Assembly (NCBI GenBank): GCA_013416795.1
Contig: RQSC01000028.1
Coordinates: 995,568 to 1,059,567 of the forward strand
Source: Prasinococcaceae sp. CCMP 1430
Lineage: Eukaryota > Plantae > Prasinodermophyta
DNA: 64,000 nucleotides
Direction: 5' to 3'
The position numbers and the translations under genes are program-made. Under the pieces are notes generated by a model. That model was not told where the DNA came from, made no database searches, and saw only the letters and a program-made list of their open reading frames with translations. Shown here piece after piece: positions 17,293 through 20,638 of the stretch; the stretch's first letter is position 1; each line of letters begins with the position of its first letter.

Positions 17293-17622
17293 GCTCAGAC
17301 GCGTGGGCAGCCATCGCGTGTTCGCTCGGATTCTCATGAGCTGTAGCAGAGAGAGTTTGATGGAGCGCACCCAACAGCGCGAGCGCGAGCCCAGTGCCTG
17401 TAATATTGGGCTTGTAGCACGCGTTCGCAGTACGCACACATACGAGGCGACGGGCACATGTGCAAGGCGTGCAAATGATGCAGTTACACCGTCACCGAGA
17501 AAGCACTCACTTAGTCTCCGAGGTCGCACAGACTAAGCCCCGTGGTGCGTGGTGCCCCCCCCCCAATCTTAGTGGCCCATGCGAGTCAGAGAATGGGGCC
17601 TCTCGCGTAAGCTGCTCCCGCT

Positions 17623-18351
17623 CTAGACAACATGGAACGCGAAAAGGCTGAGCATGATCAGCGCAATGACGAGCATGATGACCAGCAAGAGCGTCCAATT
17701 GGACGTCGCTTTGGACATGAGATTTTTGAGTCGACGCTGTGCGCGCTTGAGTGTGTACTGTGTCGCCTCGGCGTCGCGGTCGAGGTCATCGAGCAGCGCG
17801 TTGTGGACGTCGAGCTCCTCGTTCACCGCGAGGGCGATGTGGCGCGTCGAGCCAACAATTCTGCTCAGCTCATCTAGCTGTCCATCTTGCTCCGCCATGA
17901 CCTGCTCCTGCATCGCCAGAAGACCCTGGTTGTCGAGACCGGCGGTGCGCTCCGTCTCCTCCGCGGGCCCGCTGCTGAGCGAGCTGCTGCCGCCCACGAG
18001 GGCGTCGCGATCCCCTCCCCCGCCGCCGTTGCGAGGGCGGGCGATGAGGCCGCCAAGCGCGTCCGCCCGCGCACGCATGCGCTCAACCATGTCGGCTCGT
18101 CGCTGCAGTTCACGTTCCGTGCACGCACCGGCGAGGCGTGGCGAGCGCAGGGCCGCCGCGAGGGCGTCGAGGCGCGCTCGCAGCGCATTGCACCGACGCC
18201 TCGCCTGCGACGCAAGTTTGGCGGCCTGCTGCTCATCGTTCGCCGCCAGCGCAGAGCTACGCTGGCCTAGAGCAGCATTCGCCTCGGCTTCCAGGGCCTT
18301 TGCTTCGTCCAAGTCACGAAGCCACGCCTGCGCGGCGTCCTGCGACGACAT
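17623..18351 (-). CDS. SYP51: Qc-SNARE syntaxin SYP5 (SYP51/52, syntaxin-8-like)
   Basis: N-terminal WLRDLDEA helix; SNARE motif QEQVMAEQDGQLDELSRIVGSTRHIALAVNEELDVHNALLDDLD; C-terminal TM helix. Confidence 0.92.
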   Translation of the reverse strand: MSSQDAAQAWLRDLDEAKALEAEANAALGQRSSALAANDEQQAAKLASQARRRCNALRARLDALAAALRSPRLAGACTERELQRRADMVERMRARADALGGLIARPRNGGGGGDRDALVGGSSSLSSGPAEETERTAGLDNQGLLAMQEQVMAEQDGQLDELSRIVGSTRHIALAVNEELDVHNALLDDLDRDAEATQYTLKRAQRRLKNLMSKATSNWTLLLVIMLVIALIMLSLFAFHVV

Positions 18352-18359
18352 GGTCGGTG

Positions 18360-18800
18360 CTACAGTCGCTCCTTCACCGACTTCGGACCGTGCGCAGCTT
18401 CCACGACCGTGCCAGTCGCAGCCGAACCCTTCGGCGTCTCGTAGACTACGGTCCCGTCAAGCGGAATCGTCTATCCAAAGGCGCCCAGCAGCGCGCACGC
18501 GGGCGCGACAGGCGCGGCGCAGGCAGGAGACAAGAACCAGAAAGCGACAGCGGGGAGCGCGCCGGTCAGACACGCCATGCATCTCCGCTCGCGGCACGGA
18601 TCTACGCACAAAAAAAAGAGCGCGCGCCGCGTTTCCTTGCGCGCAGCACGCGCACGGTCCTGCCAGCCCGCGGCGGCGACCCCTTCCACCCGTCCCGCGC
18701 GCGCCCGCGCGCCACCCACCAGGTCGGGCTTGTACACCTGGTGCACCACCGCCGCCCCGCTCAGCAGCGAGCCCAGCGCGACCGCGTACGCGCGCAACAT
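18360..18800 (-). CDS. 63-aa mitochondrial-type microprotein, BRAWNIN/UQCC6 (DUF4516)-like; exons 18720-18800 and 18360-18470
   Basis: Spliced MLRAYAVALGSLLSGAAVVHQVYKPDL|TIPLDGTVVYETPKGSAATGTVVEAAHGPKSVKERL*. The hydrophobic helix followed by VVHxxYKPDLTIP matches the BRAWNIN signature. The intron is GT-AG, phase 0. This gene is absent from the supplied ORF track. Confidence 0.8.
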
Positions 18801-19191
18801 GCTCACGCAGTGGCCCCCGCCCCGCACCACACAGACGTGTACACCACCCCCGCGCAGACCGACGGCCCGTGCGCGCGCGTGCTTCCGCGGCGGCGCGCAT
18901 CGCCAAAGGTCAAAACGCATTGATGCACTGCGTCCAGTCAAAACGCATGGATGCACGAAGGCCAGGGAGACCTCGGGTGCCCGCGCGGAGGCGCGCGCGA
19001 AATCGCGCAGAGGCGGTACAAAAACCGGCGGAGGCGCGCGCGCCACTGCGTGCACGTGGGACGCGGCGGGTCGAGGACGCGACGGCCCCGTTTCCCCCTC
19101 GGCACTCGATCCCGTCGGTCTCGGCGGCGGAAAGCGCCGGGTCGGTTCCGTGCAGCACGGGAGGGTGGCGGCGCGAGCGGCGCCCGGGGCG

Positions 19192-20331
19192 ATGGCGCGC
19201 CCCAAGCGCAGTGCGGCGGCAGCGGCGCGGGAGGGGATCGCGGAGGCGTCGGCAGCGGCGGCGGCGGCCGAGGAGGGCGAGCCCTCGTCGCCCAAGGCCA
19301 CGGCCGAGGAGAGCGACTTCGAGGCCGAGGACGATGACGATGAGGAAGAGGAAGATATGGACGACGAGGCGAGCGACGAGGATGGCGACTTCGAGGATGA
19401 CGCGCCACCAAAGAAGAAGGCGAAGAAAGCGGCGCCAAACGGCAAAAACAAAGTTGGACCGAAGAAAGCCGCCGCCGCAGCTACTGCAGCGACGAGGGCC
19501 GCACCGGCCAAAGCAGCGCCAAAGGCCAAAGCTAAGGCTGCTCCAAAAGCGAAGCCCGCCGGGAAGGGGAAAGCGACGACAAAGGCGGCGTCGCCGGAGG
19601 CCACCTACACGCTGGTGCAAGAGCTGCTGGAGTCAGGGAACCGACCGTACAACGTTCAGATCTGCATTGACATGCTCCAGTCGAAGGGCGGCAAGAAGGC
19701 GGCCATCGAGAAGGCGCTTGCCAAGCTGGTCGCTGAGGGGCGCGCGAACCTCAAGGAGTATGGCAAAGCGAAGGTGTACCTCGCGGCTCAGCCCGACAAT
19801 GTCCTCTCGGAGGAGGAGATCGTAGCTTTGCGCGCGGAGGTGAGCGAGGCCGAGAAGGTCGCCACCGTGGCCGCTGCCGACGCGAAATCGGCTGCAAACG
19901 CGGAGCGGGCCCTCCACGCCGAGCCGACGGACGCCGAACTTGCGCAGCAGCTGGAGGCGATTAGGGAGCGCGTGAACAGCAACGAAGAGAAGCTGGCGAG
20001 CCTCCGCGCGACAGGCGAGAAAATCGACCTCGAGGACATGTCCAAGGAGACGAAAGCGACCGCAGCCGCTGTCGCTGAGTGGAAAAAGCGTCGCCGCATG
20101 TTCCTCGACGTCGAGGGTTTTCTTCTAGACGCCGCTGCCGAGGGTGGGCTAACGAAACAGAAGTTGCGTGAGGACGCTGACATCGAGGACGACGAGATGC
20201 ACGGCGTGGACTGCAAGGCGGCCGAGGCCATGATCAAGACGCACGAGGCCAAGACGAAGGCGGCCGTGCGCGGTACCGGTGCTCCCGCTGAGGGTCGCCT
20301 CAACCAGCGCATGGGATTTTTGCGCAGGTAG
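19192..20331 (+). CDS. HOP2: HOP2/TBPIP meiotic recombination factor with a long charged N-terminal extension
   Basis: Winged-helix motif LLESGNRPYNVQ...KAAIEKALAKLVAEGRANLKEYGKAKVYLAAQ, a coiled coil, and C-terminal EWKKRRRMF...ADIEDD. Confidence 0.85.
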   Translation: MARPKRSAAAAAREGIAEASAAAAAAEEGEPSSPKATAEESDFEAEDDDDEEEEDMDDEASDEDGDFEDDAPPKKKAKKAAPNGKNKVGPKKAAAAATAATRAAPAKAAPKAKAKAAPKAKPAGKGKATTKAASPEATYTLVQELLESGNRPYNVQICIDMLQSKGGKKAAIEKALAKLVAEGRANLKEYGKAKVYLAAQPDNVLSEEEIVALRAEVSEAEKVATVAAADAKSAANAERALHAEPTDAELAQQLEAIRERVNSNEEKLASLRATGEKIDLEDMSKETKATAAAVAEWKKRRRMFLDVEGFLLDAAAEGGLTKQKLREDADIEDDEMHGVDCKAAEAMIKTHEAKTKAAVRGTGAPAEGRLNQRMGFLRR

Positions 20332-20638
20332 GTGCAGCGCTATGCCTGCTGCTGGCATCAAGTCCTGCGAGAGATGCCGCGATTGGACGGCGAGCGATAG
20401 CGATGCAGTGCGAGGACCAACGATTGCGGTGCGCTCTGCGCACTCGCTGCCACATACTCGCGCCGTCAGGCTTCGGTTCAGACATGCTCGTAGGAACCTC
20501 CTGAAGTATCGCCACTCATACAACGAAGCGGATGAGGCGGAGGAGACGCAGCGCTGACGCCAGCCCATAATAGGACGCCACGAGCGGTCGGCGTTCACCA
20601 TGATAATGAATTAATGATTTGTGATGCGGCGCGCTGAA

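Follow-up and report, generated by a model that had tools for sequence, protein, structure and literature searches.

A likely bicistronic nuclear gene of Prasinoderma carries a DUF4516-family microprotein upstream of a SYP5/Syntaxin-8-type Qc-SNARE

The locus described here lies in a stretch of 64,000 nucleotides (nt) from Prasinococcaceae sp. CCMP 1430 (Prasinodermophyta), positions 995,568 to 1,059,567 of contig RQSC01000028.1 (assembly GCA_013416795.1), which is called the window throughout and has a GC content of about 0.67. On the minus strand of the window, a short two-exon open reading frame (ORF1), predicted to encode a microprotein of the DUF4516 (BRAWNIN/UQCC6) family, stops 8 nt before the start codon of a second open reading frame (ORF2), which encodes a Qc-SNARE of the SYP5/Syntaxin-8 family. 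We consider it likely that the two constitute a bicistronic nuclear gene of Prasinoderma, expressed as one spliced mRNA on which the SNARE is reached by leaky scanning. The bicistronic mRNA itself is well supported; that it is the exclusive transcript, where it starts, that its two ORFs are both translated and how the second is reached by scanning are inferences.

ORF1 comprises 63 codons in minus-strand translation. Its first exon (18720..18800) holds 27 codons, beginning with the ATG at 18800 and ending in ...YKPDL, after which the sequence continues with GTGGGT; the intron (18471..18719) is a GT..AG intron of 249 nt, in phase 0, placed directly after the P-D-L codons; and the second exon (18360..18470) contributes 36 codons, starting with T-I-P-L and closing with a TAG stop at 18362-18360. 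The spacer between the two ORFs (18352..18359) consists of the 8 nt CACCGACC. ORF2 (17623..18351) is intronless, runs from the ATG at 18351 to a TAG at 17625-17623, and encodes a protein of 242 amino acids (aa) with a helical region at the N-terminus, then a SNARE motif, and a membrane anchor at the C-terminus. Reading and translating the minus strand reproduced every coordinate, the 63-aa two-exon ORF and the 8-nt gap that had been put forward in an earlier reading of the window made from its letters and hereafter called the sequence-only reading. ORF2 starts 11 nt past the first base of the ORF1 stop and is therefore in another frame, so that read-through of the stop codon is unable to fuse the two products; fusion by read-through was accordingly rejected as a candidate, ORF2 being out of frame in both species compared here, that of the window and Prasinoderma singulare.

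The RNA evidence comprises short-read contigs from four runs (X1, X2, X3 and X5), a type of material that cannot show single molecules, transcript starts and ends, or abundance. X5 is a declared marine metatranscriptome from another study, and the RNA nature of X1 to X3 is a guess (X1 being of culture type). A 989-nt contig of X1 covers 18774-18720, skips exactly 18719-18471 and then proceeds unbroken from 18470 to 17536, so that, beyond the second exon of ORF1 and the spacer, it covers the SNARE ORF from end to end and 87 nt of the 3' untranslated region (UTR). The same 18470/18720 joint is found in a 308-nt contig of X5 that extends from 18762 to 18206, inside the SNARE ORF. In these two independent studies the ends of the removed segment read CT..AC on the plus strand, which is GT..AG on the minus strand, and its exact removal in both contigs bears out the proposal that 18471-18719 is a spliced intron. 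Since such an exact deletion is impossible from DNA, and since 8 nt are too short for a poly(A) site and a promoter, RNA beginning at or above exon 1 extends into the SNARE ORF and, in X1, all the way through it. The claim of one mRNA with both ORFs stands to the extent that junction-bearing contigs cross the spacer into SYP5, the part left over being that contigs prove no single molecule. Neither an independent SYP5 start devoid of read-through nor an unspliced state of the intron as the rule was seen in the contigs of the four runs.

Two further features of the RNA data bear on the limits of the transcript. A low-depth contig of X2 (18364-18789) retains the intron, and the coverage of this run is limited to the transcribed part, which suggests that the contig represents unspliced RNA (RNA or DNA being uncertain in this case). 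Depth is zero at 18802-19171 in all four runs, and the contigs of the plus-strand gene on the far side begin at 19186; this empty interval argues for a transcription start near the ORF1 ATG. At the opposite end, the 3' UTR (17470..17622) has an approximate low-end boundary, RNA contigs ending at 17536, 17569 and 17575. The sequence TGTAA occurs a single time on the transcript strand, at 17488-17484, in the 3' UTR and 135 nt beyond the SNARE stop, and the same scan of the transcript strand found no TGTAA between ORF1 and ORF2. A convergent plus-strand gene has its 3' end at about 17391. The 3' UTR of SYP5 also contains a run of about ten G at 17555-17565, just short of which two RNA contigs stop; one contig is one base shorter at this run, the length of which differs among environmental copies, and it is a likely source of assembly breaks.

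The assignment of ORF1 to the DUF4516 family comes from exon 1. Searched separately, each exon on its own, exon 1 scores 29.7 bits (E 5e-07) against Pfam PF14990 (DUF4516), aligning to profile positions 11-36 of 46, with a gathering cut-off of 27 bits for this family; exon 2, which would cover the last ten positions of the profile, gave no Pfam match. The passage of the cut-off by exon 1 upholds the description of ORF1 as BRAWNIN/UQCC6-like, for which the sequence-only reading had named a DUF4516 profile search as the check. A PDB sequence search with exon 1 matched no solved structure. Exon 1 holds a hydrophobic segment and an H-x2-Y-x-P-D-L motif, and over the 63-aa product the best 17-residue Kyte-Doolittle mean is 1.55, across AVALGSLLSGAAVVHQV, which is moderately hydrophobic. 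From its sequence, the ORF1 product is predicted to be a microprotein of the DUF4516 (BRAWNIN/UQCC6) family that crosses the membrane once, by way of a putative anchor. It was also borne out that callers of ORFs that ignore splicing miss this gene: on metagenome contigs they yield read-through artefacts of 77-151 aa, the DUF4516 matches of which are only weak.

The best-known member of the family, BRAWNIN/UQCC6 (C12orf73), is a 71-aa peptide of the inner membrane that is needed for complex III assembly in vertebrates, and it has been described as conserved in vertebrates and absent from yeast and nematodes (PMC7066179). ORF1 resembles it in belonging to the same Pfam family, in its size (63 aa against 71 aa) and in the order of its parts, a hydrophobic segment at the N-terminus and then the conserved H-x2-Y-x-P-D-L / T-I-P core. 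It differs in that the vertebrate gene is small and stand-alone, whereas ORF1 heads an algal bicistron, in that its C-terminal tail is unrelated, and in that ORF1 is known here from its sequence. On the strength of the profile match, the occurrence of a microprotein of the BRAWNIN family in green algae that branched off early would be new, given the emphasis of the BRAWNIN report on vertebrate conservation (PMC7066179).

For ORF2, the homology search returned 113 relatives at E values up to 1e-5. Named matches include syntaxin-51/52 of many plants, a Chara t-SNARE and a Volvox protein annotated as 'Qc-SNARE, Syn8/Syntaxin8-family', with E values of 1e-38 to 1e-26 and coverage of 80-100%. In the alignment, the first Met of ORF2 is shared with its relatives and 23 columns are invariant. 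In a search of the PDB, the stretch 152-212 matches the C-terminal SNARE motif of SNAP-25 and that of syntaxin 8 (E about 2e-4), and the C-terminal tail (221-239) is strongly hydrophobic, with a mean of 3.19. The score against the Pfam SNARE model is 20.6 bits, under the cut-off of 26.8, and the Use1 model likewise remains under its own cut-off, so that the placement in a subfamily relies on the homology search. The nearest named relatives, the alignment and the PDB matches to SNARE motifs agree in placing ORF2 in the SYP5/Syntaxin-8 family, as had been proposed. Plant SYP51 and SYP52 and Syntaxin 8 are Qc-SNAREs of the endosome/prevacuole/vacuole route. ORF2 shares with them the same architecture and 33-41% identity over nearly its whole length, and differs from them in being intronless, in lying downstream of another ORF, in scoring below the Pfam SNARE and Use1 cut-offs, and in having a location that is a prediction. 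The column aligned to the central Gln of SNAP-25 carries His in ORF2 and Gln in Volvox and Polytomella. This His at the zero layer of the SNARE was considered as an oddity and dismissed, because the aligned streptophyte SYP5 proteins and that of Nephroselmis have His as well, a point of likeness between ORF2 and streptophyte SYP5. By analogy with their families, the two products of the locus probably act in different compartments, namely the mitochondrial inner membrane and the endosome/vacuole, which makes their pairing look like a matter of gene architecture and not of shared function.

The arrangement is maintained in related sequences. Ten near-identical environmental genomic copies from Tara/Logan carry the locus, with exon 1 and the spacer invariant; in a MAFFT alignment of these copies the number of variable sites is 0 in exon 1, 3 in exon 2 and 7 in the intron, a set too alike for a selection test. 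Contigs of P. singulare type (L011-L018) present the same order of ORFs, the same strand and the same intron position, with ORF2 again out of frame. Their exon 1 has 85% protein identity to that of the window and scores 26.5 bits against DUF4516 (cut-off 27), their GT..AG intron of 692 nt is placed at the same codon, and their exon 2 starts with TIPL and continues into a diverged tail of 47 codons. The spacer of these contigs is 70 nt long (L012:2931-3000) and includes a 20-nt tandem duplication, GTAGCTGAGGGCGT[T/A]AGGC, which indicates that it grew by duplication while still remaining free of ATG. ORF2 is in turn 77-79% identical to a P. singulare protein (MMETSP1315). The assignment of the window to Prasinoderma is supported, and P. 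coloniale, for which a GC content of 69.8% has been published (PMC7455551), close to that of the window, is the probable species. Nucleotide identity between the window and P. singulare amounts to 77% in exon 1 and 74% in ORF2; it is lower in the exon 2 tail and in the 100 nt upstream, at 53% each, and lowest in the intron, at 30%. The two species differ in 12 codons of exon 1, of which 8 are synonymous, including an AGC-to-TCG serine switch among the differences, and 4 are replacements. Judged by this comparison of sequences, ORF1 is protein-coding and under purifying selection from its first codons, which argues that the ORF1 ATG lies on the mRNA.

Beyond Prasinoderma the pair was not recovered. 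Synteny is seen in the collinear pair of P. singulare-type contigs and not with the SYP5 homologues outside the genus: no DUF4516-like ORF was found upstream of or near those of Volvox, of six transcript-like contigs (three homologues) or of 80 metagenome loci from JGI, the last of these scans having returned no contig of Prasinoderma type. A word search with the unspliced read-through product did locate DUF4516 exon 1 in two other GC-rich algae and yielded no spliced full-length protein; the two exon 1 pieces score 28.8 and 27.3 bits against DUF4516, the latter being that of contig L109. The position of the intron, after the P-D/N-L codons, is common to the four algal lineages seen.

Each of these two further loci has a layout of its own. 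In the first (L107:155-560, also L108), exon 1 is 89% identical to that of the window and exon 2 is short, with 11 codons; TGTAA occurs about 100 nt past the DUF4516 stop and is followed by a convergent gene, and the DUF4516 gene looks monocistronic. In the second (L109:1812-2595, also L110 and L111), from a GC-rich alga in the GROS21 metagenome, a putative exon 2 of 10 codons is separated by 23 nt from the start codon of a different gene, which has several exons and a weak RING-finger match. Exon 1 contains one out-of-frame ATG, at 1833. Here a DUF4516 ORF may again head a bicistron, with a partner other than SYP5. The sequence-only reading had gone on to suppose that one mRNA couples a mitochondrial assembly factor to a vacuolar/endosomal SNARE; a functional coupling of complex III assembly to a SNARE finds no backing here, the pair having been seen in Prasinoderma only and DUF4516 occurring alone or with another partner in two algae.

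Not one ATG, in any frame, lies between the start codons of ORF1 and ORF2 in either species, across about 197 nt of mature sequence in the window and 292 nt in P. singulare; the count was done piece by piece, and the splice junction, at which TG meets AC, makes no ATG. As a sign of leaky scanning this ATG-free stretch is a modest one, which the sequences repeat in both species. The start contexts in the window are GAGC-ATG-T for ORF1 and GACC-ATG-T for ORF2, and those in P. singulare are GCGC-ATG-C and CAAA-ATG-T, respectively; only in the latter species is the context of ORF1 clearly the weaker. The nearest upstream ATG is at 18900 in the window, where it is lost in nine of the ten environmental copies, and at -36 in P. 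singulare-type contigs, positions that, together with the zero depth above 18802, suggest a short leader. A short leader favours bypass of the first AUG in scanning.

Expression of the locus can be pictured as follows. One promoter, within a region of about 390 bp shared with a divergent Hop2-like gene, would drive a pre-mRNA from which the single intron of 249 nt would be removed to leave a mature transcript of about 1.1 kb. Behind a short leader, this transcript would carry, in order, the 63-codon DUF4516 ORF, the 8-nt spacer and, in another frame, the 242-codon Qc-SNARE ORF. Ribosomes initiating at the first AUG would produce the microprotein, and scanning 40S subunits that pass this AUG, as they may often do owing to the short leader and the non-optimal context, would meet no further AUG before that of ORF2. 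The SNARE is in this manner probably reached by leaky scanning.

Several observations weigh against this picture. The depletion of ATG is only modestly improbable, in that ATG-free stretches of equal length account for 14% of the window and 4-6% of the P. singulare contigs, as compared with 12% and 4% in shuffles. The window context of ORF1 has an A at -3 and is not obviously weak; only three window ORFs passed the coding filter for a genome-specific consensus of start codons. The ATG of ORF1 itself (18800-18798) is reached by no contig, the furthest extending to 18789 (X2), 18774 (X1) and 18762 (X5), and all of the RNA support comes from short-read contigs instead of single molecules. To these have to be added a high-depth SNARE contig of X3, which spans 17569-18446 and thus ends within exon 2, with zero depth on 18447-18800, exon 1 included, and the 8-nt spacer, which fits termination-reinitiation as well as it does scanning.

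The X3 contig leads to the first alternative, in which the locus is incompletely polycistronic and most SYP5 protein is made from a shorter, monocistronic mRNA, the promoter of which would be internal, within the intron or the second exon of ORF1. The high depth of X3 up to 18446 and the bare interval above it could result from such an internal start, and the intron offers a T-rich stretch near 18611-18618 in GC-rich surroundings; moreover, many loci with both mono- and polycistronic transcripts have been found in green algae (Gallaher et al., PMC7896298). Nevertheless, no contig begins in the intron and enters exon 2, the X2 contig, the only one with intron sequence, spans the whole intron together with exon 1, and the X3 break is located 2 nt from a strain-variable site (18444), so that it may represent an assembly bubble in place of a transcript end. 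Furthermore, were ORF1 never scanned, its lack of ATG in two species would need no explanation. On balance, an internal promoter as the main source of SYP5 appears unlikely.

The second alternative retains the bicistronic mRNA and has ORF2 translated by termination-reinitiation, ribosomes that have finished the 63-codon ORF1 resuming at the AUG 8 nt on. ORF1 is short and the spacer very short, and inter-ORF distances of a few bases are known to favour this mechanism (PMC11291117). The spacing, however, is not conserved, being 70 nt in P. singulare-type contigs, and reinitiation does not predict an ORF1 free of ATG in both species. A length of 63 codons is also long for efficient reinitiation. 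In Auxenochlorella, where leaky scanning has been shown in vivo, mutagenesis favoured it over both reinitiation and internal ribosome entry site models (PMC11291117). We accordingly give reinitiation a low probability, and leaky scanning on the bicistronic mRNA continues to be the preferred account.

It is very improbable, in our estimation, that ORF1 is merely a regulatory upstream ORF or an untranslated leader of the SYP5 mRNA that gives rise to no stable functional microprotein. Such a role would suit the position of ORF1, the poor conservation of the exon 2 tail (the 53% nucleotide identity given above) and the failure of RNA contigs to reach the ORF1 ATG. It is contradicted by the score of ORF1 above the cut-off of its Pfam family, by the excess of synonymous changes in exon 1 (8 versus 4), by coding that several algal lineages preserve from the first codons onward, and by another alga (L107), in which the gene of the DUF4516 family apparently stands alone. 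A related comparison can be drawn with the conserved peptide upstream ORFs (CPuORFs) of plants, the peptides of which act in cis and have, to our knowledge, no stand-alone homologues. ORF1 is like them in being a conserved coding ORF in the leader of a main ORF, the translation of which it is likely to lower, and unlike them in that its family also occurs as independent genes.

Finally, the notion that the contigs were wrongly joined in assembly or stem from contaminating DNA, with the two ORFs on separate, non-overlapping transcripts, can draw on the facts that a contig spanning two genes shows no single transcript and that X1 to X3 are only guessed to be RNA, and it is nonetheless extremely improbable in view of the exact GT..AG deletion, which DNA cannot provide, its recurrence in a second, independent study that is a declared metatranscriptome, the want of room in 8 nt for a poly(A) site and a promoter, and the limitation of depth to transcribed parts.

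A likely bicistronic gene with leaky scanning to its second ORF finds ready parallels among green algae. Exclusively polycistronic nuclear mRNAs occur in Chlorophyta (Gallaher et al. 2021, PMC7896298), and transcripts of this kind with a short upstream ORF, to which the sequence-only reading had appealed, are indeed on record (PMC7896298, PMC11291117). In Auxenochlorella the ORFs lie a median of 40 nt apart, with overlap in some cases, and depletion of AUG before ORF2 is a hallmark of leaky-scanning bicistrons there and in Chlamydomonas (PMC11291117). The Prasinoderma locus resembles chlorophyte polycistronic loci in that one spliced mRNA carries two ORFs, the first of them the shorter, which differ in frame and are set apart by a very short spacer, and also in the depletion of AUG before ORF2 and the collinearity kept in a related species. 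In a similar way, ORF1 of the chlorophyte loci is often a small protein of mitochondrial assembly type and the partners are often functionally unrelated. The present locus differs in that its host belongs to Prasinodermophyta, outside Chlorophyta, and in that it is documented by short-read contigs and sequence.

As regards novelty, the DUF4516-SYP5 pair is not named in the texts of PMC7896298 and PMC11291117, and a search of the supplements of the latter gave no syntaxin, SNARE, DUF4516 or UQCC entry. In the literature searched, Prasinoderma was not linked to polycistrony, which goes without mention in its genome paper (PMC7455551). What is new, then, is the phylum Prasinodermophyta and the DUF4516-SYP5 pair, the kind of gene, a green-algal polycistronic one, being already known.

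The region upstream of ORF1 (18801..19185) is shared with a divergent plus-strand gene, and the transcription start of the bicistron should lie at its low end. The region contains a tandem direct repeat of 28 nt (18909-18964), 82% identical between its copies and with the core GTCAAAACGCAT[T/G]GATGCAC, and, some 40 nt ahead of the ORF1 start codon (18837-18844), a palindrome, GTGTACAC, which occurs once in the window against an expectation of 0.25; both the repeat and the palindrome may be promoter elements. An ATG at 18920 is in frame with ORF1, with no intervening stop, and would add 40 Arg/Gly-rich residues to the microprotein. It is probably outside the mRNA, given that depth is zero there in every run and that the extension is not conserved in P. 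singulare. The divergent gene (19186-20600, plus strand, ATG near 19190) is Hop2/TBPIP-like, with a PF07106 WHD_TBPIP winged-helix domain detected on its metagenome copies; it has an acidic N-terminal stretch and is expressed in three of the four runs. Hop2 is a meiotic recombination factor, and we know of no sexual cycle described for the alga that carries this Hop2-like gene.

Prasinodermophyta branched off earlier than Chlorophyta and Streptophyta. With a well-supported case in Prasinoderma, nuclear polycistrony would reach a third green-plant phylum. A broader proposal, which we advance tentatively and regard as possible but doubtful, is that leaky-scanning polycistrons are regular in Prasinodermophyta too, and so either ancient or repeatedly evolved, and that small microproteins of mitochondrial assembly, DUF4516 among them, have been captured repeatedly as ORF1 before unrelated genes, such as SYP5 and, at a distance of 23 nt, the RING-finger-like gene of L109. 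With its 8-nt spacer and ATG-free ORF1, the locus lends itself to testing leaky scanning in a compact, natural setting. For annotators it carries the warning that what would pass for the '5' UTR' of SYP5 is coding and, since ordinary gene calling hides ORF1, genomes of this sort may under-report small factors of the respiratory chain.

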